From Scyliorhinus canicula (Eukaryota): a stretch of DNA of 64,000 nt. The DNA lies in the NCBI RefSeq assembly GCF_902713615.1, contig NC_052153.1, forward strand, positions 94,304,301-94,368,300, in the 5' to 3' direction. This document shows positions 8,543 to 42,475 of this stretch, one piece after another. Made by a program: the position numbers and the translations under genes. Below the pieces are notes generated by a model. The model did not search any database. It saw nothing but the letters and a program-made list of their open reading frames with translations, and was not told where the DNA came from. Each line of letters begins with the position of its first letter. The stretch's first letter is position 1.

Positions 8543-9480
8543 GAACAACAAAGAATAGTACAGCACAGGAACAGACCCTCCAAGCCTGCATCGATCACGT
8601 GTCCTATCTAGACCAACTGCCTATATCCTTCTATACCCCATCTGTTCATGTGCCTGTCAGATAAGTCTTAAAAGTCGCTCACGTATTTGCCTCAACCACC
8701 TCACTTGGCAGTGCATTTCAGGCCATCGCCACCCTCTGTGTAAAAACCTTTCCCTGTACATCTCCACTGAACCTATCCTCCCTCACCTTGAACTTGTGCC
8801 CCTTTGTAATTGTCATTTCCGCCCTGGGAAAAAGCCTCCAACTGTTCACCCTATCTATACCCTCCTAATTTTATAAACTTCTATCAGGTCGCCCTCAGCC
8901 TCCGTCTCTCGAGGGAGAACAATCCCAGTTGATTCAATGTCTCCTCATAGCTAATACACTCCATACCAGGCAGCATCCTGGTAAATAGTACTCTCTTCAA
9001 AGCCTCCATGTCCTTCTGGTAGTGTGGTGACCAGAATTCCAACTGTGTCCTAATCAACGTTCTGTATAACTAACAGGGCAGCATGTGGCACAGTGGTTAG
9101 CACTGCTGCCTACGGCGCTGAGGACCCGGGTTCGAGTCCAGGCCCTGGGTCACTGTCCATGTGGAGTTTGCACGTCACCCCTTGTCTGCTTGGGTTTCAC
9201 CCCCACAACCCAAAGATGTGCAGGTTAGGTGGATTGGCCACACTAAATTGCCCCTTAATTGGAAAATAAATAATTGGGTACTCTAAATTTTAAAAAACTG
9301 TTACAACATTTGGGAGCTTTTATACTCGATACACCGTCCGATGACGGCAAACATGCTTTCTTTACCACCATTTCCACCTATGCTGCCACTTTTAAGGAAC
9401 TGAGCACCTGCACTCACAGATCTCTCTGTGTCTCTATGCTCCTGATGGTTCTGCCATTTATTTTGTAGCTCCCACCTGAG
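8543..9480 (-). mobile_element. CR1 LINE 3' fragment interrupted by a SINE
   Basis: Reverse-complement CR1 tail (ACAGCACAGGAACAG) and RT C-terminus, continuing after the SINE at 9076-9297. Confidence 0.85.
9076..9297 (+). mobile_element. HE1-like SINE, A-rich short tail
   Basis: GGGCAGCA head, A box TGGCACAGTGG, B box GGTTCGAGTCC, A-rich end. Confidence 0.9.
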
Positions 9481-10832: not shown

Positions 10833-13818
10833 AAGTGGCAGGGGATGGGAATCAGATTAGAAGGTTAGAGGTCAGTAAAGAGGCAGCAACTAAAGCCAGT
10901 AAGGTACTGGATAATAAACTCAATGTGACTAAGGGGAAGAGTAGACAGGGAAGAGATGATGAACGCAAAGGGACAGGTGCATTTATTTTAATGCAAGAAG
11001 TGTAGCAGGTAAGGCAGATGAACTTAGGGCTTGGATTAGTACCTGGGAATATGATGTCATTGTTATTACTGAGACTTGGTTGAGGGAAGGGCAAGACTGG
11101 CAGCTAAATATCCCAGGGTATAGATGCTTCAGGAGGGATAGAGGGGGAGGTAAAAGGGGTGGAGGAGTTGCATTACTGGTCAGAGATGATATCACAGCTG
11201 TGATTAAGGAGGGCACTATGGAGGATTTGTGCACTGAGGCAATATGGGTAGAGCTAAGAAATAGGAAGAGTGCAGTAACATTGTTGGGACTTTACTACAG
11301 GCCTTCCAAAAGCGAGCGTGAAGTAGAGGTATAAATATGTAGACAGATTAGAGAAAAATGTAGGAGCAATAGGGTGGTTGTGATGGGAGATTTTAACTTC
11401 CTCAACATTGAATGAGACTCATGTAGTGTTGGAGGCGTAGATGGAGCAGAATTTGTAAGGAGCATCCAGGAGAGTTTTTTAGAGCAGTATGTAAATAGTC
11501 CAACTCGGGAAGGGGCCATACTGGACCTGGTATTGGGGAATGATCCCAGCCAGGTGGTTGAAGTTTCAGTCGGTGATTACTTTGGGAATAGCGATCACAA
11601 TTCCGTAACTTTTAGAATACTCATGAACAAAGACGAGAGTGGTCCTAAAGGAAGAGTGCTAAATTGGGGAAAGGCCAAGTATAACAAAATTTGGCAGGAG
11701 CTAGGGAATGTGGATTGGGAGCAGCTGCTAATGGTAAATCCACATTTGAAATGTGGGAGTCTTTTAAGGAAAGGTTGATTAGAGTGCAGGACAGACATGT
11801 CCCTGTGAAAATGAGGGATTGAAATGGCAAGATTAGGGAACCATGGATGACGGGTGGAATTGTGAGACTAGCTAAGATGAAAAAGGAAGCATACGTAAGA
11901 TCGAGGCAACTTAAAACTGATGAAGCTTTGGACGAATATCGGAAAGTAGGACAAATCTCAAACGCGCAATAAAGAGGGCTAAAAGGGGTCATGAAATATC
12001 TTTGGCTAACAGGGTTAAGGAAAATCCCAAAGCCTTTTATTCTTATATAAGGAGCAAGAGGGTAACTAGAGAAACGATTGGCCCAGTCAAAGACAAAAGA
12101 GGGAATTTATGCGTGGAGTCAGAGGAAATGGGTGAGATTCTTAATGAGTACTTTGCATCGGTATTCACCAAGGAGAGGGACATGACGGATGTTGAGGCTA
12201 GGGATGGATGTGTAAATACTCTAGGTCAAGTCGGCATAAGGAAGGGGGAAGTTTTGGGTATTCTAAAAGTCATTAAGGTGGACAAGTCTCCAGGACCGGA
12301 TGGGATCTATCCCAGGTTACTGAGGGAAGCGAAGGACGAAATAGCTGGGTCTTTAACAGATATCTTTGCAGCATCCTTGAGCACGGGTGAGGTCCCGGAG
12401 GACTGGAGAAGGGTAGCAGGGATAATCCAGGGAACTAGAGACCTGTGAGCTTGATGTCAGTGGTAGGCAAACTGTTGGAGAAGATACTGAGGGATAGGAT
12501 CTATTCACATTTGGAAGAAAATAGACTTATCAGTGATAGGCAGCATGGTTTTGTGCAGGGAAGGTCATGTCTTACAAACTTAATAGAATTCTTTGAGGAA
12601 GTGACAAAGTTAATTGATGAGGGAAGGGCTGTAGATGTCATATACATGGACTTCAGTAAGGCGTTTGATAAAGTTTCCCATGGCAGGTTGATGGAAAAAG
12701 TGAAGTCGTATGGAGTTCAGGGTGTCGTAGCTAGATGGATAAAGAACTGGCTGGGCAACAGGAGACAGAGAGTAGTGGTGGAAGGGAGTGTCTCAAAATG
12801 GAGAAAGGTGACTAGTGGTGTTCCACAGGGATCCGTGCTCGGACCACTGTTCTTTGTGATATACATAAATGACCTGGACGAAGGTATAAGTGGTCTGATT
12901 AGCAAGTTTGCAGATGATACTAAGATTGGTGGAGTTGCAGATAGCGAGGAGGACTGTCAGAGAATACAGCAAAATATAGATAGATTGGAGAGTTGGGCAG
13001 AGAAATGGCAGATGGAGTTCAATCCAGGCAAATGCGAGGTGATGCATTTTGGAAGATCTAATTCAAGAGCGGACTATATGATCAATGGAAGAGTCCTGGG
13101 GAAAATTGATGTACAGGGAGATCTGGGAGTTCAGGTCCATTGTACCCTGAAGGTGGCAACTCAGGTCGATAGAGTGGTCAAGAAGGCATCCAGCATGCTT
13201 GCCTTCATCGGACGGGGTATTGAGTACAAGAGTCGGCAGGTCATGTTACTGTTATATAGGACTTTGGTTAGGCCACATTTGGAATACTGCGTGCAGTTCT
13301 GGTCGCCACATTACCAGAAGGATATGGATGCTTTAGAGAGGGTGCAGAGGAGGTTCACCAGGATGTTGCCTAGTATGGAGGGTGCTAGCTATGAAGAAAG
13401 GTTGAGTAGATTAGGATTGTTTTCGTTGGAAAGACGGAGGTTGAGGGGGGACCTGATTGAGGTCTACAAAATGATGAGAGGTATGGACAGGGTGGATAGC
13501 AACAAGCTTTTCCCAAGAGTGGGGGTGTCAATTACAAGGGGTCACGATTTCAAGGTGAGAGGGGGAAAGTTTAAGGGAGATGTGCGTGGAAAGTTTTTTT
13601 ACGCAGAGGGTGGTGGGTGCCTGGAACGCTTTGCCAGCGGGGGTGGTAGAGGCGGGCACGATAGCATCTTTAAGATGCATCTGGACAGATATATGAACGG
13701 ACGGGAACAGAGGGAAGTAGATCCTTGGAAAATAGGCAACAGGTTTCGATAAAGGATCTGGATCGGCGCAGGCTGGGCGGGCCGAAGGGCCTGTTCCTGT
13801 GCTGTAATTTTCTTTGTG
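10833..13818 (+). mobile_element. CR1 LINE, near full-length decayed ORF2, in an NMRK1 intron
   Basis: WQGDGN start, APE motifs and a 435-aa RT ORF (12445-13752: QHGF, DFSKAFD, GVPQGS, FADD). It has in-frame stops and frameshifts and a CR1 3' tail. Confidence 0.95.
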
Positions 13819-16512: not shown

Positions 16513-16675
16513 GTAACCATTTTTGCTTTCATTTACATTTTTCTGACCAAATCATGGTTGTTAGATTTCTGTGAATAACAGTTTAATGTCAGAATGTTCT
16601 CAATTTAAATTTGTAAACGCTGCTGTTTTTTGAGGATGTTACTTGTGTGCAGATAAAGGAGAACCAGTGGATATA

Positions 16676-16864
16676 GGGTGGGATTCTCTGTCCCGCCGCA
16701 CCAGTTTTTTGGTGCAGCGCACTCCCACCGGCAGCGGGATTCTCTGTCCCACTAGCCAACCAATGGGGTTTCCCATTGTGGGGAGCCCCATGCCGTTGGG
16801 AAATCCCCGGGCGTGGGTGCGCTGCTGTCGGAATGCAGAGTCCCGACAGTGGAGAATCCAGCGC
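16676..16864. mobile_element. MITE (probably PIF/Harbinger-derived)
   Basis: GC-rich island with terminal inverted repeats GGGTGGGATTCTC...GAGAATCCAGCGC and internal sub-repeats. Confidence 0.65.
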
Positions 16865-16884
16865 GTGGTGTATTTGCATTTTCA

Positions 16885-18120
16885 GAAGGATTTCAGGTAA
16901 CCCATGAGTGGGTCACAATGCATAGATGAAACTTGGCAGGGTTAATGGAAGAGGTTAAAGGGGACTTTGAAAGGTGGGATATGTTGCATTTGACGTTGGC
17001 AGGGAGGGTGCAGGTAGTAAAGATGAATGTGCTGTCTAGGCTCCTGTTTGTCTTTCACGATTTTTCCTTCTACAGTCTTTTTCTGGAAGGTGGAGGCACT
17101 GTTCTCGGATTTTGTGTGGGCAGCGTAGGTGCCGGGGGTAAGGAGTGCCCTACTACAATGAGAGAGGTAGGGAGGGGGGGTTGGCGCTCGAACCTGATGC
17201 ACTACTACTGGGCAGCAAATGTGGAGAAGGTGAGGCACTGGTGGGGAGGGGCAAAGTGGATCAGGTTGGAGGAGGAGGCCTGTAAGGGCTCCAGTTGGAG
17301 GGCTCTGGTGACAGCCCCGTTGCCGCTCGCTCCTGTATATGGGGAGTCCAGAGGTGGAGTCAACTATTAAGTTCTGGAATCAGTTGAGGAGGCACTGTAA
17401 ACTCAGCCACATGTCGGTGCTGACACCACTCTATTGGAACCACAGGTTTAAGCCGGGGCGGATGGATAGATGTATGGGCGTGGAGGGAGGAGGGGTTGGA
17501 GCGGTTCAGGGATATGTTGTTGGAGGGGAAATTCGCTGAATTGGATGAGCTGCGGGAGAGGTTTAAATTACCGCGGGGGAGCGAGTTTAGGTACTGACAA
17601 GTGCGGGGGTTTGTGCGGAAGGAGCTACTGACGTCCCACCTACCGGAGTATACACTGCTACAGAAATTGCTGCTCCCAGGTGAGGTGGGGGAGGGCAGGA
17701 TCCGAGACATATACGAGTGGCTGGGAGAACAGGGTGAGGCGCTGCTGGAAAGAGTTAAGTTGAAATGAGGGGGGGGGTTTGGGGAGAGAGATAGGATGGG
17801 GGCTCTGGTGTAAGGCGATGTGGCGAGTGGACTCAACTTCCTCCAGTGCGAGAATGAGCTTGATTCAGTTTGAAGTGGTGCACAGGGTAAACCTGAAGCG
17901 GGTTCAGATGAGTGAGTTCTTCCTGGGGGTAACCAATGGGCGTGAAAAGTGTGGACAGGGGCCGGCGAATCATGTTCACATGGTTTGGGGTTGTGGCATG
18001 TTGGGAGAGCTTCTGGGAGGCAGTATTTGGGACCTTATCGTGGATGGTGGGGGCCGAGGTGAAGCTGGACACAATGGTGGCAGTCTTTGGGGTCTTGGAG
18101 GTGTTGGAGCTGCTGGAGGT
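16885..18120 (+). mobile_element. Decayed L1/Tx1-like LINE, post-RT region and zinc knuckle
   Basis: LTLAGRVQVVKMNVL, YYWAAN and C..C..PANHVHMVWGC motifs; homologous to the 42476-44865 copy. Confidence 0.85.
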
Positions 18121-18129
18121 CGGATATCC

Positions 18130-20930
18130 AACCTGGAATTTCAGCCTGACTGGGGTTTCTCTGGTTGGCCAATGCAGAATTCATGGACTTCCACCATAGA
18201 AAAACCGGCGCCACACCTGGACCGATTCTTTGACTGCTAAGGGGCTCGAACCGATGCCACATGGAACACAATCGATTCTGATGAGAAACAGTGCAGGATT
18301 TGCCGGTTTCGCGATTCACACTCAAAGGCTGACAAGCTGCAGCCGCATATACAGTCTTTACTCCCCACACACACATCCAAACCAACAAGATGGCATCGAG
18401 GAGAGCAGCCCCGAAGTTTACTGATGCCGAGCTGGATACCCTCTTGGACGCGGTGGAGGAGCATTAGATGACCTTGTATGCCCAGGAAGGAGGCTGCCAG
18501 CTGCCTCCCTTCACTGTGCCTGGGCGCAGGTGACAGAGGCTGAGAGCGCCATGGGGGCCAGCAGTCCGGAGGCCAGCAGTGCCGGACAAAACTGCACAAT
18601 CTCCTCAGGGCAGCCAGGGTGAATAGGCAGCACTGTGCTTTGGCAGTAACCTGCAACCCACAAACCCAGAACCCTACGTCACCCCACTAAGAGAATGGCT
18701 GAACCCCCATCCGCCTCACATGCTGGTACCCATACCAGGTGCCCCGGCCGGGTGTCCTGGAGACTGAGGGCACCAGCTACCCACCCCCTGGCTGCATGCG
18801 TCGGACTGTTGTTTTTCTGTTCCTCCCCCCAGTCCCGGTGAAGGCCCGGCACAACTGCCGGGAATGGGAGAAGACGAGAGGTGGTCTGCCGGACCTGCGG
18901 CCCCTCACTGTGGCCAAGCAGAGGGCCCTGGACTTGGTTGGCGGTCCGGAGGAACGGGTCGTCTCTGAGGTGGAGCTCGGCAGCGGGTGAGGAAGTGAGG
19001 CCCTGCTTAGTTGCAGTTCCCTGTGACACGTGTGCCAGCGCTGACCTCCCTGACCCCCGTAGCACCCTCACCCCCATATCAGCCTCATGCCAACACCACC
19101 ACCCGTCACCCCACACCCCCACGCCCACCCCCGACAACCCCACCCACACGCCAACCCCCGCTGGCCTGTGGTCTAATCATACATTCTGTCTTGTGTCTTG
19201 CAGGACCTGCTGGTGTAGGGGCGGGTCCATCTGGCGTCCCCGCCCCCAGCGAGTGCCAACAGCCGGGGCCCCCCTGTGAGCCGGGCAGTGATGCTGAGAG
19301 CAGCTTGGACACCAGTCCTTCACCCAAAACTCCGGGGATCCTAGAGCTCGGGTCGGAGAATGACACAGATTTCCCATGACAGCTATCTCCAACACCCACC
19401 ACCATCCCAGAGACACTCACTTCAGGTTGGGCATGTTAGTGAAGAGGCTCCTGGGACACTACCTGTTGAGCACCACACAGCTGCTCCGGTACATCAGGTA
19501 GAGGTAGGAGCACCCGAGGAGGTGGATGGTTGGAGGGCGAGCTGACCCCAGGGACTCGCTATCGTCAAGGTGGGTCTTGAGCTTCTGGAACAAACAGTCC
19601 CATCATAGTGGAGATGCAGTCGCAGAGCCAGGGACTACATGAGGGGCTGTCGTCGAGCATCCAGTACCTGCAGGTTCAGTTGGAGGAGTCCAACTGCTTG
19701 CAGGAGCAGGAGGTGGTGCAGACCATGTGTGCCACCCAGGCCAACACCGCAAGGGTGGCATTCGTGGTGGAGGCATTGGGGGTGATGATTTTGGCTATGG
19801 ATCAACAAGGCCAAGGCCTGGGGCGTTCTGTGCAGGCGCTGGCCGAGGCCCAGGACAGGGTTGTCGCCTCACAAGTGACCATGTCCCTGAGCCACCTGGA
19901 AATTGTAGCGCTCTTGAGCGTGGCCCAGTCACAGCAGGCCATGGCTGGGAACGTTGGTATCATTGCCCAGGCGCCAGTCAATGTGGCACAGACACAGTGA
20001 GAGGTAGCCCAGTCCCAGAGGAAGATGGCGCAGTCACTGGCTGATGTGACACAGCCCCAGAAGGTGGTGGCACAGCCAATGGGTGATGTAGCGCTGTCCC
20101 AGACAGAGATGGACCACTCCCTATGCTACATGGCCACCAGCATGCAGACCCTGGTCGAAATCAGAGCGAGCCTCGAGGACTGGCAGCTCTAGGTGACAGG
20201 GCAACTTCGGGAGATAGCTCCCCTTGCACCCCCGTCCCATGGAGTAGCCTGGGGGCCATCGGGCACTCCTGGGAGGAGGTGATGGGGCCTTGCCGGTGAC
20301 GCCCAATGGGGAGGCACCGGAACGCTGCAGCACCTCGGACTCTTCCACCCTCTCCCCCTCCTGTCCCTGCCGCATCTGGTGAGCAGTGAAGCAGGCAGAA
20401 CGGGATGGCACCATGCCACCCGGGACACCCGAGCAACAGCTGGGCCTATCCATGCCCGGTCACCCCAGAAGACGCCCGCCAACGGGGACCCAGGTCGCAG
20501 GCAGGAATCACATCAGGCCGTCTCCATTCCTGCTGTACCATCTGGGGAACCACCTAGATGTAGCATTAGGGCCCATAAGGTCAGGAAGTTAGACACCATT
20601 TAAGTTGGCATAGGTGCAGGGCACAGTTTACTTATAGGGGCTATGGTACAAATCTGTATATATTCTCTCACATTAAACACCTGTTGCCACCTTTACAACT
20701 GCCTCAGTGCTCTGTCTGATGGGTGTGAGGGGTGGTTGGTCAGGTCTGGCTGGGGGAGATGTGTGGGGGGGATGGGCGGACCCTGAGAGGCCCGGGCTCC
20801 CCTCCTGCCTCCTGATCGTCCCTCCCATCCCAGGGATCCAATGGGACCATGTGGTGGAATGGCTAGTTTACATGCAGAGATCACCCAGGTGGACGATGGA
20901 CAGTGCTACTGTGGGCAGGAATCAGCGGTT
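18130..20930 (+). mobile_element. PIF/Harbinger transposon remnant carrying a spliced Myb/SANT-like gene; boundaries approximate
   Basis: GC-rich block. ATG 18390 gives MASRRAAPKFTDAELDTLLDAVEE, then QCRTKLHNLLRAAR|gt (18619), then KARHNCREWEKTRGG, followed by Pro/Ser-rich and coiled-coil segments. No DDE transposase was seen. Confidence 0.75.
18390..20603 (+). pseudogene. Harbinger Myb/SANT-like DNA-binding protein, multi-exon, disrupted
   Basis: In-frame TAG after VEEH, frameshifts and a damaged exon-2 acceptor; acceptor cttgcag at ~19203. Confidence 0.7.
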
Positions 20931-24557: not shown

Positions 24558-25004
24558 AATTTTATAATTAATTATTTTAACTAGTCAAGAACTAGATGTT
24601 CTGTAGTGCATCATTCAGACTGACCAGTCCACAGAACATGACACACCCTTCTCCCACGTCAATGAATTTTGCCAGAGGTGGTAAATGGGGTCGAGGATCC
24701 CAGAATCATCTTCCACCCACCCGTATCAGCTGATCTGGTGAAAATCTGGGCCCATAAAATCTTTATTCCGCGCAAACCATTAATGCTTATTTTCTTTTTA
24801 ATTAATCATAAAATTATTAATTGTAATATATATTTAAACCTAGCTGGTAAATTCATGTGTTGATAGTTAACATTTTCAATGCTCCTGGCATTTGTAGTAG
24901 TTTGTGCATTTTTCTGTAAGTTAATGCTGACAATAAAGATCACAATGTTTAACTTCACAAAAATACACAGAGCATCAAGTAATTCAGTATATTTTTTGTT
25001 TCAG

Positions 25005-25088
25005 TTTATTTGGATGGAACAAACTCTCCAGATGCGTTGTTTGCACGAGTATATGAAAATATTTTAAAGGAAGTTCAAAAACTCCAAG
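25005..25088 (+). CDS. NMRK1: NMRK1 exon (84 bp)
   Basis: tcag|TT TAT..CAA G|gtcacg encodes IYLDGTNSPDALFARVYENILKEVQKLQ (NRK YLDGT motif). Confidence 0.93.
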
Positions 25089-25169
25089 GTCACGCTTTTT
25101 TTTCTTGTGTTCCATGCTTCTGTTTTGATAGAATGAGGAGCCGCAATATTAGCTAAATGGTTTAATCTT

Positions 25170-25870
25170 AAAATGAGTACAGGAACAGATAGACCCTGGG
25201 TTTTGCCCATAGAAGTCTTTGGTGGCAGGGTAAATTGAGAAACCGCTCAGAAAAATACTTCAGATCCTTGGCTTTATAAATAGTGTAGAATACAATAACA
25301 AGGAAGTTATACTAAACCTTTATTAAATCATTGGATAGGCACCTGCTGAAATATTGAGTCCAATTCTGGTAACCACGCATTAGGAAGGATTTCAATGCCT
25401 TGGACTAGGCACAGAAGAGGTTTATGGAATGATAGCCGGGATGTGAGACTTAATTAATTAATTAATGATCTTTAGACGAGAGAAGCTGTTTTTTCCCCTC
25501 CTAAGTACAGAAGGATAAGGGGAGATTTAATAGAAGCAGTCAAAACAATTAAACATTTTGATAATGTAAATAATGGTTTACAATGGCCGAAAGGTCAGTA
25601 ACCAGAAAACGCATATATAATTGACAAAAAGCAGAGGCAAGATGAAGAGGATTCTTTTTACACAATGTTATTATGATCTAGAATGCACTGTCTGAAAGGG
25701 CAGTGGAATAATTCAGTCATGATTACTGATAACTTTCGCAAGAAAATTGGAGTAATGCTTAAGAGGGAAACATTTGCAGAATTCCAGGGAGAGGGCAGAG
25801 GAATTGCAATAATTAAATAGCTCTTTCAAAGAGCTCGCATCGGCACAATGGCCTGAATTTCTCTGTGAAT
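25170..25870 (+). mobile_element. Highly decayed CR1 3' fragment
   Basis: Remnants of LEYCVQFWSP and RGDLIE coding patterns. Confidence 0.6.
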
Positions 25871-26180
25871 TAAGAAGGCAAACAACCTCCACTTTTAGAA
25901 AGTGACCTTCTCTTCCATACAAGTGGAATTAGGAATGATTTAACGAATGTGTTTGCGCCACACTTATGGTTTTTCAAACAATTCCTGCATGGGTGCTCTG
26001 ACCAACATTCTGCCAATTTTAACATTAATAAGCCTTTACTCCAAATGAACATTAGTTTACACCTATTTAACCAGCTTGCTTTTATCATTATGCCATACCA
26101 CATAATAGAAAGTTACTGATTTGTGAGTTGAAAACAGCTTTCTTTCATTGACTGTATCATAATGATTGGCTTTTTTATAG

Positions 26181-26191
26181 ATTGTTGCTGA
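26181..26191 (+). CDS. NMRK1: Probable NMRK1 terminal coding exon (..D-C-C-stop)
   Basis: Acceptor ttttttatag at 26171-26180. The phase-1 junction gives GAT TGT TGC TGA, and a short last exon fits NMRK1 structure. Too short to prove by homology. Confidence 0.6.
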
Positions 26192-26346
26192 CTAACTGAC
26201 ACCTCTGAAATAGGATATTGGAAAATTGAAGATTCTGGTGAACAAATGACTTGCAGCACCGAGCTATCTATGACTGAAGGCGATTTGGTGAAAATCCAGA
26301 GATTCTATTGGAATTTGCATAAACCAAGCCTTTGAATAATCCATGC

Positions 26347-26746
26347 ATTCAAGATTTTGCATTTGAACATTTCCTGCCCTCAAAATTTCACATCCTGTTA
26401 TTATTACAACATTTGAGTGATGCTTTAGTTTATTTCCTAATGTCAACATTAATCATGGGAATTCTCTATTTACCTATAATAAGTAATAGTCTGTCATATT
26501 TCTGCAGTTTCCTCCAGCAAATCGGATTGTGGTAGCTGCTCTGCTCATCTTGCAACCAACTACCTTTTTGTGGCACATGTTTGAAAGTGCTTTCTCTTGC
26601 TTCAGCCTGTGGCCAGGATTTTCCAGCACCACCAGTGGTGCATATCGTTGCTGGCAGCGCTGGAAAATCCCAGCCAATGTCGAGGAACTAAACACAAGTT
26701 CAGCGATTCAACAACATATTTTGTGCTTTTTTCGCACCTCACATAA
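26347..26746 (+). repeat. Left arm of ~400-bp inverted repeat (in probable NMRK1 3'UTR)
   Basis: Reverse complement of 28644-29044; by-eye alignment gives ~14 substitutions and 4 small indels. Confidence 0.97.
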
Positions 26747-27130
26747 TTAAAATTTTAAAAACTGATTCTTCTTTTAATTTCTGATTTTCTGCAACAGTTT
26801 TTGCAGTCTGTAGTCACACTTCTAGTATTCACCTGTTGCTGCAATTTTGTCCTATTCAGAATTTCCAAGCATGACTCTCAAATTTCTTGGTTCCCCAATG
26901 AGACTCCACGGTCCTGCCCTTTTCAAAATGTCTTTGTCACATTGTCAGAAGTTCCAACCGTCTGCATGACTATCTCCATCAAAACCTCCTTGTTTTCCAG
27001 TCCTACCTCTCTTTATACAACTATATTTCCCTTATTCATGCTCCAATAATGCTGTGAATTATGATATCTTGCTTCTTAATTGTTGTGGCATAGCTTTACT
27101 GCAACCACAAGCAAATTATTGCACCTTTTG

Positions 27131-27136
27131 AATAAA
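27131..27136 (+). terminator. Candidate NMRK1 polyadenylation signal
   Basis: AATAAA followed by GT/T-rich TGTGGTGTCTCTGTTTTATTTTT. Confidence 0.5.
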
Positions 27137-27860
27137 TGTGGTGTCTCTGTTTTATTTTTAAGTGTCTAGCCATTTACAACTTTCATTATCATCTCCGCTG
27201 TGAGACTTTTTTTCCAACTACCATCGCTTTGCCCATACACAGCCCGAGTATTGATGACCCTGTCCTACCTCCCATCCTTCCCATACCCTACATTCAAATT
27301 TGAAGCTATCTTTCATATTCTTATTTTCATGCAATGCACACGCATTACTCAATTTGCTTTCTTCCTGCTACATCAGACCTATGTCTTTCCTATTACTAGT
27401 CTGTATCATTTTTCATGCTAAAGGGCCCTGCCTCTTGGGCTATCCTAATCCCACTTTCATTTATTTTCCCACCCCGCTCCCCCACCTTCTCATTAGGTAT
27501 TCTACTGCAGTGCTACCACAACCTGTCTCTAGCTTCCATCTCAGCCCTACTCTTAGATCGTTTTCTCAGATTGCATTTGGCCTAACACCTTGCAAATTTC
27601 ACTGTCAATTCTTCATCTTTCCTCTGTCATTATGTTCCAACTTTAATCTAACATTTTATTCCAATACTACTCTTTGTCTCATCCTCGAAACTTCTAGCTC
27701 AATCCTCATCCATATCTAATTTTCTCTTCTTCCATCATGCTTTACACCTCTTCGACATCCCAGTCCCACTCCTCAATTCTTCAATATCCACCCCAACACA
27801 TCCCAGATATAATCTTTCAATTTTATATTCCAAGTTGGGCTTTATCTCAACCAACCATCT

Positions 27861-28293
27861 AAGAACAAGAACAAAGAAAATTACAGCACAGGAACAGGCC
27901 CTTCGGCCCTCCCAGCCTGCGCCGATCCAGATCCTTTATCTAAATCTGTCTCCTATTTTCCAAGGTCTACTTCCCTTTGTTCCCACCCGTTCATATACCC
28001 GTCTAGATGGCTCTTAAATGATGCTATCGTGCCCGCCTCTACCACCTCCGCTGGTAAAGCGTTCCAGGCACCCACCACTCTCTGCGTAAAAAACTTTCCA
28101 TGCACATCTCCCTTAAACTTTCCCCCTCTCACTTTGAAATCGTGATCCCTTGTAACTGACACCCCCACTCTTGGAAAAAGCTTGTTGCTATCCACCCTGT
28201 CCATACTCTCATAATTTTGTAGACCTCAATCAGGTCCCCCCTCAACCTCCGTCTTTCCAATGAAAACAATCCTAATGTACTCAACCTTTCTTC
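27861..28293 (-). mobile_element. Young CR1 3' fragment
   Basis: Near-identical reverse complement of ~13390-13818. Confidence 0.93.
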
Positions 28294-28643
28294 AACTAGA
28301 CCCCATCAAGGCCAGTCCAATCTTTCTAATTTCAAGTTTATAAAATAGGCTCACAGAACTCAGAGCTAGATTTTAATAAGCCAAATTCAGAGACTACAAG
28401 ATATATACTTCCATTTAGCACACATTTCCAGTTCCAACTTTACTTATTGTACTTTGTTCATTACACTGCTATTGCTATGAAACAGTTCATACTTGACACA
28501 ACATGAAAAATATTATTTCATAATAAAAGGTGGACATAGCATGTTGGAGTAATGTCTCATTGTAATGTGAAAGTTTTTATATTATCCAATAAAATATTAA
28601 AATGACTGCATTCTGATTATTATTCAATAAGTACATTGACAGT

Positions 28644-29044
28644 TTATGTGAGGGGGGAAAAAAAAGCACAAAATATGTTGTTGAATCGCTGAACTTGTAT
28701 TTAGTTCCTCGACAGTGTCTTAGGATTTTCCAGCGCTGCCAGCGACGATATGCACCACTGGTGGTGCTGGAAAATCCTGGCCACAGGCTGAAGCAAGAGA
28801 AAGCACTTTCAAACATGTGGCCACGAAAAGATTGTTGGTTGCAAGATGAGCAGAGCAGCTACCACAATCCCATTTGCTGGAGGAAACTTCAGAAATATGA
28901 CAGACTATTACTTATAGGTAAATAGAGAATTCCCATGATTAATGTTGACATTAGGAAATAAACTAAAGCATCACTCAAATGTTGTGATAATAACAGGATG
29001 TGAAATTTTGAGGGCAGGAAATGTTCAAATGTAAAATCTTGAAT
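28644..29044 (-). repeat. Right arm of ~400-bp inverted repeat
   Basis: Reverse complement of 26347-26746. Confidence 0.97.
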
Positions 29045-30014
29045 AAAAAAATAATTTTTAAAAACAAATTATTCTTTGAACTGCTAGCTATAAACTGCGA
29101 TAACAGCAGTAAGAAAAAATAAATAATGAATGACACATCATGTCTTCAGTTTGTCATCTGTGCTTCATATCCAATTCATTATTTTTTGAATTTCATTTAT
29201 TGTTGTTACATAGGCAGATATGGTCACTAGTGTAATAAATGCCAAGTTAATCTGTTGGGTTAGTTGGGAGCTATATACCTGCTATGACACTAGCACAGCT
29301 TTTACTCTTCAAATAGTGGCCCAAGAGGTGGAATTTTATGCCGTGATGGTCTGACTGGGTGCATTCCAGAAGCAGGAAGAGATGGGGCAGGGTCATAAAA
29401 TTGGATAGCGGGGGTGCTGTACCCATCACTGGTACTGTGGGCTTCGGGCAGCTCGCCATCCTTGGGCTAATTGAGGCCCTTAAGTGGAAAATTAATGCCC
29501 TGTTTCTATCTTCCTGCTGCTTGCTATTTTACCATCGGAGGGGGTGCCCAGCCCCATGGCGAAGGCACCAGAATTTACCAGCTGGCGACTTTGCTTGGGG
29601 ATGAGATGGGGCCCTCCTGCTTGGGCACTCTGTACCCACCTGAGGCCCCACCCCATGCATTTGTTCCTGCTCCTGGTTTCTATTTGCCCCTCACTGGGAA
29701 TTGCCAGACTGGCCTGGCAAATCCCGCACCCCCTTACCTAGGTGCCTGACTGCAGTCACTATATTTTGTTAGGAAATGAATGTAACCCAACAGTGGCAAC
29801 CAATCCTGGAGGTGCTACGGGAACCAGAGCTCCGTTGGCCACTTGATTGGGTGGTAGCTCTCGGAAGTGTAACTTACTCACAAATAGGGTGGCAGTATCA
29901 TCTTGAGTCAATTAACTGTCCAATGGCAGTAAAATCTGCTTGGAACTTCCCCACCAAGCATAGGCAGGCCCACTCTCATCTTTTAAGCTATTGGTGGGGC
30001 AACCACCGTGTTGT

Positions 30015-30302
30015 ATTTGGTGTTCGATGTCCAGCAAGGAATCTACCAAGACTTGAGTCTTGTCCAAACCAGGTTCTTTATTGAATCACACGTGGTAAGA
30101 TAGTGCTCTGTTACAGAGCAAGTTATCATGGAGTTTCTTTGTGCTCCTCTGGAACTACACCTAACACGACTATCCACCTGTACGTCTTATAACCATCTGA
30201 TCATGACCGGACATGTCCGCACACTCCCATGTAAAATTTCATCCATGATCTAAGTTAACTGACTATTGGTGTAGAATCTCATCTGAAATATTGCAACCAA
30301 CA
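30015..30302 (-). mobile_element. Possible old solo LTR
   Basis: Ends in ..CCAACA, with minus-strand AATAAA at 30077-30082. The left terminus and TSD are degenerate. Confidence 0.3.
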
Positions 30303-30689
30303 ATCTAGAATTGTTATATTGGAGTGCTCACCCTGGAATTACTGCACAAAGTTTTCACCACCATTAACAAAATGGCTGCAAGAAGTAGCAGTAAAAATAT
30401 ATAGTTTTGCCACTTGAGTCACAAACCCAACTACTTACATTTATATAACACGTTTAACACATTAAAATATCCTAAGGGACTTTGTGGAGCAGAAACAAAA
30501 GGTTTTTTTATTCTTTCACGGGGTGTGGGTGTCACTGGTTTTTCCAGTAAATGTTAGGTCTGCAATGTACTATGAGTGCACGGTGAAGGCAGGTCCGATA
30601 GGGACATTAAAACGACAATTAGACTGTTAAATGAAAAATAATTATCAGCGTTCTGGGGAGAAGGCGCTAAGTAAATTGGAGCGCCAGTG

Positions 30690-31190
30690 TAGACACGATG
30701 GGCCGAACAGCCGCCTTCTGGGCTGTGACAATGACGGTGTGTTTATTAAAATCAGTTTTAAAGCGAGAGTATTTGGCAACATTCTTGCGGTTGACACCTG
30801 ACGTACAGCTGATTGAGCGTTCTGTTCCTAAATCCTCCGGGCCTCCAGGTGTCGCTGTGATGCGAGAATGTGGCTAGTGCGCGCGCGTGCGCGCGCGGTA
30901 CGGCCGCTCTTTCTGTCGCCGTCTCCTCGGCGCGGTTGTGAGGCAAGGATTTTGTTGGCGGCGGCTTTGCGGAGAAGAGGAAAAGGAGAAAAGATGGAGA
31001 ACGAGAACAACGAGCACTGCCCCGGGGAGGAACAAGAGAAAGAGGAGGAGGATCGCTTGGAGAAAGAGCACTTCTGGAAAATCATTAATGCTTTTAGATA
31101 TTATAGGTAAACTGGAAATAAACAGGCGGCCACCCAGTTGAGGGGGTGAGAGGAGGCAGCCCAGGCCTGAGAGGGGGAGGTGGTCAGGGG
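30690..31190 (+). promoter_or_regulatory. CpG-island promoter of CARNMT1 with NRF1-like GCGC motif
   Basis: Local CpG enrichment, TGCGCGCGCGTGCGCGCGCG at 30878-30897 and a TGACG half-CRE near 30799, directly upstream of exon 1. Confidence 0.8.
30994..31106 (+). CDS. CARNMT1: Carnosine N-methyltransferase 1, exon 1
   Basis: Strong-Kozak aagATGG; MENENNEHCPGEEQEKEEEDRLEKEHFWKIINAFRYY|gtaaac matches CARNMT1 RLEREHFWKIINAFRYY. An alternative in-frame ATG lies at 30868. Confidence 0.93.
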
Positions 31191-40417: not shown

Positions 40418-40853
40418 AGAACAAAGAACAAAGAAAAGTACAGCACAGGAACAGGCCCTTCGGCCCGCCAAGCCTGCGATGACTATGCTGCCCATTTAAA
40501 CTTAAAATCTTCTACACTTACGGGTCCGTATCCCTCTATTCCCATCCTATTCACGTATTTGTCAAGATGCCCCTTAAACATCACTATCGTCACTGCTTCC
40601 ACCACCTCCTCCGGCCGCGAGTTCCAGGCACCCACTACCCTCTGTAAAAAAAAAAAAAAATGTTCCTCTAAATCTTGCCCCTCGCACCTTAAACCTATGC
40701 CCCTTAGTAATTGACCCCTCTACCCTGGGAAAAAGTCTCTGCCTATCCACTCTGTCTATGCCCCTCATAATTTTGGAGACCTCTATCAGGTCACCCCTCA
40801 ACCTCCTTTGTTCCACTGAGAACAAACCAAGTTTATTCAACCTCTCATAGCTA
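40418..40853 (-). mobile_element. CR1 3' fragment
   Basis: [22 protein letters not shown]; tail. Confidence 0.9.
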
Positions 40854-42475
40854 AAAGACTTATGGTGTGTTCATGGATAATGTCAGGAGGGGCAATATGC
40901 AGATTAGAATTAGGAGGAGTCAGGTGATGTGAGCATGGGAGCTGATGTGTTTTCTCGAGCTCTCGCTCAATTCTTTTAATCCTTTATTTTATCCTAATGC
41001 ACATTTTTGGAATATATGTTTTCTGCTGTGTCCCTGCATGATCCTGGTCAGAGTTTGGTGGTGAAGAGCCGAGTTGAATCAGAAAGAATCCTTCTTTGAT
41101 TAGGGCGGTCGGAGATGGCTGGAGTGGGGTCCAGCTTGCAGTGGCGGTTTTGCTGGTGAGCGGACATGTGCCTTGGCGATGCTGTATGCATCGGGATGAT
41201 GACCGCCATTGCAAATTATGATCTTGGCTCAGTGGTGCAGGTTTGTGTTGCTCACTTTGAACTGCAAAGTATCCTTGAGAGAAGGTTCGACAGAGTACAT
41301 TGTATCTGGTCTTCGGGCTTGATTGGGGGCCTTAATCATTCGTCTTGGACTGTCCTGTCTGTGATACTTGTTGTGAGGAGTTGGAGGTGGGTTACAAACA
41401 GACTTTTAAATGATTTAACAAGGCAAAGCGAAGCTGGTTATTCAGCCTGGAGGAAATCTGAGGTTTAATAATATGCTATGTTAGCAAAATCTGTGTTAAT
41501 CATTACAGTGGCAACAACGTTAAACTAGGTTCGGCTTGTGGTAAGCACTACAGAGTGTGCACACTGGCTATAATTGATCCTGGCGATTCTGACATCATCA
41601 GGAACATGCCAGAGTAAATCAGTGAGAAATAAACCAAACAACGACTGAAATATTTTCCAAATTAAATTATATTAAAAAGACAAAAAAAAATCTTTCCAAC
41701 AGTTAATTCTGTTTGAATCTGATAAATTTCATATAATAGATTACTAAAACAGCCAATAATAACATATAAAAGCATTGTGTCCGTTTTGAAGCCAAATGTA
41801 CTCTTTGGAACATAACCATGTAATGATAGATTCAAAAATAGTGGGGCACTCAAAATGCAGTTGGATGCTAGGCTTAGGTGAGTTAAGAACGAGAATGCAA
41901 AGCTTTGAAAAGTGAGTAACCTTTTCATGTTTACTTTTTCTTAACTGTCCTGACTCGAGTAAGTTTTAAAAAGTTACTGATTTTACAGTGTTCAAGTGCT
42001 TTTCCTTTGCACACATATCATATAACTGTATAATCGCACTTGTTTTCTCCCCTCAGAAGCTTCCCTCCCTCATCAGACCCCATATTTTCTGTGGTTAAAA
42101 AACCTGGGCAACCTGGTGTCAGTCTGTTCCTAATGGGTTTTCCCCATCTAATGCCAATAAGCATGTAAATTGTCATAGGAGATTCCCTATCTAATGTGTA
42201 TTACTCTCCACATTGAACGTGTTGGCCTCAACTGTGTTTTTAATGTGTCACACCTGAGATTTTGCCTCAGTTTGTTTGGAATACAGATCTGCATTCTCTA
42301 CTCCATAGTGACATGTTCATGTAGCCCAGTGTGTATCATTACTATGCAGCTCCACCTGGAGAAACAGTGTTAACAAGATTTGACTCAATATTTCTTCAGA
42401 AACTTGTGCATCATTAGTTATTTTCAATTTCCAAACTTCTGACTAAAATGTTGTGGCAAATGAGCAAACTATCAC

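Follow-up and report, generated by a model that had tools for sequence, protein, structure and literature searches.

Hyper-edited double-stranded RNA (dsRNA) formed by inverted repeats in the 3'UTRs of mRNAs is known from the editing-enriched regions of C. elegans (PMC4408787), and hyper-editing has been described across metazoans, the elephant shark included, so that there is a precedent for hyper-edited long dsRNA in a cartilaginous fish (PMC5625713). Immunogenic cytosolic dsRNAs need ADAR1 editing to avoid MDA5 (PMC12695637). Two more points of reference are the inverted Alu pairs of humans and an engineered mouse transgene in which a coding region is followed by a long inverted repeat within a polyadenylated 3'UTR; mice tolerate the latter, editing it only slightly in somatic cells and turning it into siRNA mainly in oocytes. 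With regard to how such repeats arise, inverted duplications mediated by template switching and microhomology are rearrangements of the MMBIR/FoSTeS type.

The locus described here lies within a window of 64,000 nucleotides (the whole stretch of DNA that was analysed) from the shark Scyliorhinus canicula, and its features are collected in the table. It is probable that the 3'UTR of NMRK1 has acquired a derived, local inverted copy of part of itself, and that the default mRNA folds into an edited stem which is a tolerated by-product. The edited NMRK1 hairpin is real but of a familiar structural type, and it is not a new kind of system. As in inverted Alu pairs and the C. elegans regions, a long and nearly perfect intramolecular duplex is predicted within a 3'UTR, and as in other hyper-edited 3'UTR dsRNAs the A>G differences cluster densely on the transcribed strand and do so only within the arms that pair. 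Unlike Alu pairs, the shark arms consist of unique UTR sequence that was duplicated once and locally, and their stem of 386 bp exceeds that of most such pairs in length and regularity. The layout resembles that of the mouse transgene, although the shark hairpin is a natural and apparently fixed allele of an endogenous gene, and assembled RNA contigs show the edited form at the listed sites, in contrast to the slight editing of the transgene. The ADAR1-dependent dsRNAs that avoid MDA5 (PMC12695637) differ in organism, and a cytoplasmic location of the shark hairpin or an involvement of MDA5 or interferon would be conjecture.

Features of the NMRK1 3'UTR and its surroundings (positions are those of the window)
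Feature	Positions	Strand	Remarks
NMRK1 penultimate coding exon (..YLDGTNSPDALFARVYENILKEVQKLQ)	25005-25088	+	human NMRK1 residues 168-191 matched weakly in PDB; shark NMRK1 proteins matched by tblastn; donor site in use in RNA contigs
NMRK1 last exon	26181-29140	+	11 coding bases (D-C-C-stop, TGA 26189-26191), then 2.9-kb 3'UTR
Left arm	26347-26746	+	ancestral NMRK1 3'UTR sequence, in situ
Palindrome-containing segment, ~70 nt (GGATTTTCCAGC...GCTGGAAAATCC)	26624-26695		in both arms; missing in all three outgroups (alignment, blast gap)
Spacer (loop)	26747-28643	+	single-copy ancestral UTR except for LINE-like insert; DNA depth 2-5
LINE-like repeat fragment, 5'-truncated	27862-28294	-	in spacer; very high copy, lineage-specific; DNA word depth 5x10^5-6.6x10^5
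Right arm	28644-29044	-	derived inverted copy of left arm
AATAAA	29042-29047	+	created at duplication junction (arm end ..GAAT + ancestral A-run); Heptranchias has ATATCAAAAAGG here
AATAAA	29118-29123	+	kept in Heptranchias (L003 GAATAAAG at ~29117); candidate ancestral poly(A) signal
CARNMT1 first coding exon	30994-31105	+	PDB 5yf0 match, E 3e-7

The end of the NMRK1 reading frame is fixed by a splice from 25088 to 26181 (GT..AG; joint 25086 to 26179, cut +2), which is present in RNA contigs of runs X32 and X15 and in one raw read of X24; NMRK1 proteins of other sharks end in ..QKLQDSC. The 3' end of the gene falls somewhere in ~29060-29140. CARNMT1 follows on the same strand, so that the two genes stand in tandem, and in the orthologous Heptranchias locus (L003) a CARME-domain gene begins 4.3 kb past NMRK1. 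An Rfam search of 25000-31000 gave only sub-threshold chance matches (HOTAIR_3 at 20-21 bits against a cut-off of 80, and snoZ267), and Pfam gave no match for the ORFs of the arms and spacer. A 79-aa ORF at 28577-28816 on the minus strand has zero relatives among 5.8 billion proteins, and the arms thus offer no coding or transposase lead.

A global alignment of the two arms contains 383 matches, 14 mismatches and 7 gap bases (383/397 aligned bases match), and a repeat search resolves their complementarity into four collinear blocks of 89-99%. The preliminary description was therefore correct in placing inverted arms at these coordinates, with the left arm beginning 155 nt past the stop codon and AATAAA motifs at 27131, 28522, 28588 and 29042. 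It had also reported two perfect runs of ~74-75 bp, of which one is indeed 74 nt (26575-26648) and the second, at 70 nt (26406-26475), is close but not equal, and it had pointed to arm differences compatible with G-U pairing in the + strand RNA; these exist (4 of 6 transitions), but at a level no higher than chance and not significant, and the pattern of arm differences looks neutral. Exactly two copies of the arm occur in the 64-kb window, where they form the high-identity inverted pair with the closest spacing. DNA word depth, counted at a likeness of at least 85%, is 1-8 in the arms and 4-8 in single-copy flanks, against ~5x10^5 in the repeat within the spacer, which bears out the view that the arms belong to no repeat family and are not transposon ends. 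An interspersed pair of the inverted Alu kind was considered and set aside, as neither arm belongs to a dispersed family by window copies or DNA depth. The spacer repeat, putatively LINE-like judging from the tail motif of its ORF, has further copies in the window at 13392-13817, 40418-40846 and 8544-8925. An assembly artefact is unlikely, since contigs run across each of the four arm junctions, in three cases contigs from the runs of other studies: the outer left junction by a contig of X32, the inner left by contigs of X15 and X32, the inner right by contigs of X1 and X32, and the outer right by a contig of X1.

The ancestral state of the UTR can be read from Heptranchias, Rhincodon and Chiloscyllium, which made up the outgroup DNA. 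All three keep the left arm, its flanks and the spacer in the order of the window (left arm at L003 27219-27525 in Heptranchias), and the spacer is collinear with L003 27524-29003 at 68-71% identity, the LINE-like fragment being missing from the orthologous site there. At the orthologous site Heptranchias, which has 88 nt there, and Rhincodon both lack the right arm, whose sole match in them is the left-arm orthologue, in reverse. The Chiloscyllium locus, with a run of N (41167-41695) downstream of the last spacer-aligned stretch and no counterpart of the right-arm site, is uninformative on this point. Absence of the right arm from two outgroups in which the left arm is collinear marks the right arm as a derived inverted duplication. 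Arm-to-arm K2P distance is 0.032-0.036, compared with 0.26-0.35 from arm to outgroup, and derived substitutions are present in both arms; a rate-based estimate would put the duplication at about one tenth of the age of the species splits from Heptranchias and Rhincodon, and gene conversion between the arms may have taken place. Judging from the alignments, the palindrome-containing segment is an earlier insertion, older than the arm duplication.

The junctions of the right arm display 2-4 nt of microhomology and a small loss or replacement of target bases, and no direct repeat of at least 4 nt is found at the arm boundaries that could represent a target-site duplication. Homology of the flanks past the arm ends, in inverted orientation, scores no better than shuffles. 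These features liken the event to MMBIR/FoSTeS-type duplications (a nearby inverted copy, short junction microhomology, no target-site duplication, slight change of target bases), although in the shark the mechanism is deduced from the junctions alone. The duplication would have been a local, non-transposon event, with a replication template switch and end-joining insertion of a free fragment fitting equally well. The fallback reading of the preliminary description, a local duplication resembling a template switch, agrees with the outgroup comparison as far as origin is concerned. One copy of an 8-mer, TTGAATAA, precedes the left arm by 7 nt, and another overlaps the end of the right arm (offsets of 7 and 6 nt). 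The 8-mer was considered as a hAT-like target-site duplication and rejected, as the repeat would not adjoin it and the outgroups retain the supposed element. A retrocopy origin of the right arm was likewise dismissed, given that the A-rich run after the arm is ancestral (ATCAAAAAGGTCATTTTT in Heptranchias) and that a target-site duplication is lacking.

Bulk RNA depth is flat from 26181 to ~29100, continuous to the 28950-29149 bin, and zero beyond; it is also 0 in the NMRK1 intron. In X32 the depths are 45.6 for the spliced contig, 52.1 for the spacer and 48.6 for the right side, and spliced NMRK1 contigs continue into the left arm. Such even depth across both arms, followed by zero, suggests that the major NMRK1 mRNA carries both, which would make the hairpin-bearing form the default one. 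Because contigs break within the arms, neither a read nor a contig was seen to span the two, and as the RNA evidence consists mostly of assembled contigs, minor unedited or shorter isoforms would be hidden.

In the predicted minimum free energy structure of the 2.9-kb UTR, 386 nt of the left arm are bound up with the right arm in a stem that includes helices of 132 and 96 bp. A>G differences from the genome were found at 44 (X32) and 47 (X15) places in RNA, against 11 in DNA run X1, an excess of 33-36 on the + strand; T>C differences (13-14 in RNA, 14 in DNA) are not in excess. The listed RNA-only A>G sites fall inside the arms in 12 of 13 cases, at 26351, 26352 and 26519 on the left and at 28665, 28670-28672, 28675, 28773, 28774, 28785 and 29020 on the right. 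The listed sites read A in X1; all 12 of those in the arms fall in A:U pairs of the predicted stem, and at none of them is the 5' neighbour a G. One 204-nt arm contig contains 22 differences, compared with 1 in 1187 nt of spacer, and A>G density in the arms is ~50 times that of the adjacent spacer. Site 29020 is G in 8/8 raw reads of + strand RNA. Clustered A>G of this kind is ADAR-type hyper-editing, with ADAR itself as the presumed enzyme. The proposal that the arms form long dsRNA serving as an ADAR substrate, with A-to-G clusters on them, has thus been borne out, with + strand RNA covering both arms.

Since RNA and DNA were sequenced from different samples or animals, a polymorphism could underlie any given A>G site; for this reason editing is argued from clustering, strand bias and restriction to the arms, and not from individual sites. 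That the A>G differences as a whole are polymorphisms, or artefacts of mapping or assembly between the arms, is very improbable: contigs of one arm can align to the other, but placing arm on arm yields at most two A>G places (28699 and 28831), neither of them listed, and the excess is of a single substitution class on one strand, recurring in two studies and in raw reads with the density contrast between arms and spacer given above. There is also little chance that ADAR acts on a duplex of two molecules, NMRK1 sense RNA and an antisense transcript, and not on an intramolecular hairpin. Single-cell reads with the first mate on the + strand do cover 26750-27749 at a depth of 3-6, opposite to NMRK1 exon reads, which implies either that antisense RNA exists or that an artefact is present. 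Yet these reads lie in the spacer, whereas editing is limited to the arms, and the T>C excess expected of an edited antisense partner does not appear. Moreover, bulk RNA depth is 0 in 29150-29950, which argues against an abundant unspliced transcript from the CARNMT1 side; the divergent CARNMT1 transcript that had been suggested to cross the arms does not appear in bulk RNA (depth 0 at 29150-29349 and 29550-29949).

The least credible explanation of all takes the 2.7-kb unit for a non-autonomous DNA transposon or foldback element whose terminal inverted repeats measure 400 bp, or else for the result of two independent insertions of the same interspersed repeat. Long inverted termini and the 8-mer near both outer ends would suit it, but species without the right arm still carry the left arm and the whole spacer, collinear, and single-copy arm depth, arm ORFs without protein relatives and the lack of any target-site duplication abutting the repeat ends speak against it as well. 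A different proposal, put forward in the preliminary description, is that alternative polyadenylation toggles between a short NMRK1 mRNA and a hairpin mRNA, a regulatory switch acting via nuclear retention, Staufen, Dicer or PKR/MDA5. Four AATAAA motifs do lie upstream of the distal sites (one of them at 28957, inside the right arm; the other distal motif is at 29118), a slight 3'-biased signal (1.4) occurs near 28350-28549, and few tissues and runs were looked at. Bulk depth, however, does not drop after 27131, 28522 or 28588, and 3'-biased single-cell reads pile up distally, at 7.2 in 28950-29149 versus 0-1.4 near the proximal sites (one run, 1% sampled). With distal 3' ends dominant the switch is unsupported; in addition, neither Heptranchias nor Rhincodon shares the motifs at 28588 and 29042, and the arms have diverged as neutral sequence predicts, which leaves the switch improbable. 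Somewhat apart stands the idea that in this lineage the hairpin acts as a brake on NMRK1 output, either by keeping the RNA in the nucleus, by lowering translation, or by giving rise to Dicer-made siRNAs against NMRK1 itself. The AAUAAA created at the junction is situated in the base of the stem, and stem formation, or unwinding driven by editing, could thereby decide which 3' end is used; we consider such a brake unlikely.

The reading that we favour, a local duplication giving rise to a tolerated hairpin, would run as follows. At roughly a tenth of the age of the split from Heptranchias and Rhincodon, a 400-bp piece of the NMRK1 3'UTR would have been copied in inverted orientation to a place 1.9 kb downstream in the same UTR. 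A template switch or the insertion of a fragment by end joining would have brought this about, given microhomology of 2-4 nt at the junctions and the lack of a target-site duplication. As the NMRK1 mRNA would normally end at a poly(A) site just beyond the copy, the default transcript would fold upon itself, its arms pairing within a single molecule into a ~386-bp stem with perfect helices of up to 132 bp and a 1.9-kb loop. Both arms of the + strand RNA would then lose many of their adenosines to deamination by ADAR-type enzymes, and the stem, partly unwound by editing, would persist as a tolerated by-product and not as a selected switch.

The NMRK1 hairpin is thus a natural counterpart of the engineered long-hairpin 3'UTR transgenes, with a stem of ~386 bp that is not derived from repeats and that resides in the default mRNA of an NAD-salvage kinase. 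Its ancestral state is known, and hairpin-less relatives are available for comparison. The locus would indicate that a vertebrate can tolerate a long-hairpin mRNA while editing it heavily, and it offers a defined substrate for the question of how cartilaginous fishes route endogenous long dsRNA among ADAR, Dicer and innate sensors.

NMRK1 and its downstream neighbour CARNMT1 lie in tandem on the + strand, where exon-sized ORFs are similar to human nicotinamide riboside kinase 1 (2qg6, E 2e-6) and, exon for exon, to shark NMRK1 proteins, and the ORF at 30868-31110 is similar to carnosine N-methyltransferase (5yf0, E 3e-7). The last coding exon of NMRK1 is tiny: the splice 25088|26181 leads into D-C-C-stop, in agreement with the ..QKLQDSC C-termini of other shark NMRK1 proteins, and places the stop (TGA, 26189-26191) 155 nt before the left arm of the inverted repeat, as the preliminary description had it. 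One NMRK1 intron contains a G+C-rich stretch (16589-20500, up to 64% G+C near 20000) in which many ORFs of 100-158 aa overlap on both strands; it probably represents what is left of a mobile element.

The inverted repeat itself (26347-26746 and 28644-29044, 1897 nt apart) was confirmed by global alignment, the left arm and the reverse complement of the right sharing 383 matches, with 14 mismatches, 7 gap bases and perfect runs of up to 74 and 70 nt. Neither the outer nor the inner flanks hold inverted homology above shuffled controls, and the edges of the repeat are therefore sharp. BLAST found two arm copies in the whole window, both being the arms themselves. When contigs of the DNA run X1 were placed on the window at a likeness of at least 85%, the arms had a summed word depth of 1-8 and the unique flanks one of 4-8, and the value reached 5x10^5 to 6.6x10^5 on 27750-28349, where the spacer fragment that we take to be LINE-like served as internal positive control for a dispersed repeat. 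The arms are thus not a repeat family, and the restriction to two copies holds on both counts. Diverged copies of the LINE-like fragment occur at other places in the window, and one NMRK1 intron contains, at 13392-13817, an inverted copy that is 93% identical to it. The arm ORF had no relatives in a large protein collection, and Rfam gave nothing above threshold. The interval from the right arm to the CARNMT1 promoter contains further interspersed repeats at 29350-29549 (DNA word depth 63) and 29950-30750 (up to 4626), both also present in the RNA runs.

Many small contig sets contain 0.4-0.74 of the stretch's words. The RNA sets X32 and X15 carry a GT..AG joint, 25086->26179, at depths of 45.6 and 30.2; their depth is 0 in the intron bin 25950-26149, continuous from 26150 through the bin 28950-29149, and 0 at 29150-29349. 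The spliced, spacer and right-side contigs of X32 have similar depths (45.6, 52.1 and 48.6). In X24, a poly(A) single-cell run of which 1% of the raw reads was sampled, NMRK1 exon reads have their first mate on the - strand, and such reads peak at 7.2 in 28950-29149, against 0-1.4 near the proximal AATAAA sites. From this distal peak and the continuous bulk depth it follows that the hairpin-bearing form is the predominant NMRK1 mRNA of these samples, although no single molecule with both arms was seen; a polyadenylation switch between an ordinary mRNA and a hairpin-bearing form, as had been proposed, is not supported by the same data. The 3' end falls between about 29060 and 29140. Besides the AATAAA motifs already recorded at 27131, 28522, 28588 and 29042, others occur at 28957 and 29118; the one at 29042 was created by the duplication junction, and Heptranchias shares the one at 29118.

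In the minimum free energy fold of 26181-29075, 386 nt of the left arm are base-paired to the right arm, the stem including unbroken helices of 132 and 96 bp; for the two arms by themselves, a duplex energy of about -688 kcal/mol is predicted. A>G, T>C, C>T and G>A differences numbered 11, 14, 15 and 11 in X1, 44, 13, 13 and 11 in X32, and 47, 14, 16 and 7 in X15, so that the RNA excess of 33-36 places is confined to the A>G class, in a comparison that is unmatched since the RNA and DNA runs come from different animals. Clusters of RNA-only A>G sites were found on the arms as anticipated (26351, 26352, 26519, 28665, 28670-28672, 28675, 28773, 28774, 28785 and 29020); X1 has A at every one that it covers (its depth is nil at 26519), and each of the 12 adenosines pairs with U in the predicted stem. 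Among raw reads of the + strand RNA class, 8/8 have G at site 29020, and X15 shows 22 differences in a 204-nt arm contig against 1 in a 1187-nt spacer contig. A 5' G precedes none of the 12 sites, compared with 19% of arm adenosines (chance of 0 in 12, 0.08). Placement of contigs from one arm on the other was rejected as the source, as it yields at most two possible A>G places, neither of them listed. There is no T>C excess (13-14 in the RNA runs, 14 in X1), and an edited antisense partner is therefore not indicated. On the folded model, the pattern appears to be what ADAR hyper-editing leaves on an intramolecular hairpin of the + strand. Editing of this kind has been documented on a large scale in the brain of the elephant shark (PMC5625713).

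X24 also contains reads oriented opposite to the NMRK1 exon reads, their first mate lying on the + strand. These cover 26750-27749 at a depth of 3-6, exceeding the sense reads there, end at the left arm's inner edge, and are absent from 28350-28949. They could stem from antisense RNA, with priming on A-rich stretches, or from an artefact of the library, maybe one related to the hairpin. As bulk RNA depth is 0 at 29150-29349 and 29550-29949, the signal is not an abundant unspliced CARNMT1-promoter transcript, and the divergent transcript suggested to cross the arms has no abundant unspliced form.

Searches for representatives and for homologues supplied shark NMRK1 proteins, and the loci of Rhincodon typus (L001), Chiloscyllium punctatum (L002) and Heptranchias perlo (L003) were compared with the window, non-coding sequence aligning at ~68-75% identity.

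Features of the NMRK1 3'UTR region and their counterparts in Heptranchias perlo
Feature	Window	Strand	Heptranchias (L003)	Remark
Upstream flank	26058-26344		26909-27216
Left arm	26347-26623 and 26696-26746		27219-27525
Spacer, first part	26751-27861		27524-28675
LINE-like 3' fragment	27862-28294	-	missing; 22 nt between neighbouring matches	X1 word depth 5x10^5-6.6x10^5; heavily represented in RNA
Spacer, second part	28326-28641		28697-29003
Right arm	28644-29044		missing; 88 nt instead of 448
Downstream flank	29089-29320		29091-29330

In Heptranchias the right arm matches the left-arm orthologue only, in reverse orientation; in Rhincodon it is likewise missing and an unrelated repeat occupies the site; in Chiloscyllium, where the last aligned spacer stretch of the locus is followed downstream by a run of N, no counterpart of the site was found. 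Continuous homology crosses both left-arm edges in all three species, so the left arm is ancestral UTR in place and the right arm a derived inverted copy, an arrangement incompatible with a transposon bounded by terminal inverted repeats. The A-rich run that follows the right arm is ancestral sequence, and its reading as a poly(A) tail was rejected accordingly. The junctions allow microhomology of 2-4 nt and, as had been noted, bear no target-site duplication, no direct repeat adjoining the arm boundaries; a template switch or an end-joining insertion would fit them. The 8-mer TTGAATAA is present a few bases upstream of the left arm (26332-26339) and again overlapping the right arm's end (29039-29046), where it supplies the junction-made AATAAA; the pair does not qualify as a target-site duplication. 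An A/T-rich direct repeat of 33 nt (26750-26782 and 29053-29085, 79% identity, local alignment score 19 against a shuffle maximum of 16), 4 nt past the left arm's inner end and 9 nt past the right arm's outer end, could be chance in low-complexity sequence or the trace of a multi-step template switch.

Arm-to-arm K2P distance is 0.032-0.036, against 0.26-0.35 between window and outgroups, which would put the duplication at about one tenth of the age of the splits from them, if there was no gene conversion. Polarised differences occur on both arms and only 4/6 transition differences keep a G-U pair, as would be expected from neutral decay. Both arms share a ~70-nt segment that contains a palindrome of its own (26624-26695, mirrored within 28697-28770; GGATTTTCCAGC ... 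GCTGGAAAATCC) and is missing from all three other sharks; it is a small insertion or template switch that affected this spot earlier, before the 400-bp duplication. Both orectolobiform sharks have a ~1 kb insertion inside the left-arm orthologue, near window 26490-26513 (L001 11310-12280, L002 37235-38236), and Heptranchias is without it.

In sum, an inverted duplication of young age and local origin makes the default NMRK1 3'UTR a hyper-edited hairpin. Of the earlier interpretation, the double-stranded ADAR substrate is supported by public RNA data, and the polyadenylation switch and the "undescribed regulatory system" are not. In the scenario proposed here, a 400-bp segment of the 3'UTR would have been copied downstream in inverted orientation by template switch or end-joining insertion, and mRNA ending past the right arm would fold the arms into a hairpin that then undergoes ADAR-type editing of the + strand. 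Mice tolerate an engineered long hairpin in a 3'UTR well, its entry into RNAi taking place mainly in oocytes (PMC3245926), and in human cells exonic dsRNAs are the class needing ADAR1 editing to avoid MDA5 (PMC12695637); both cases are reasonable leads for the shark locus.
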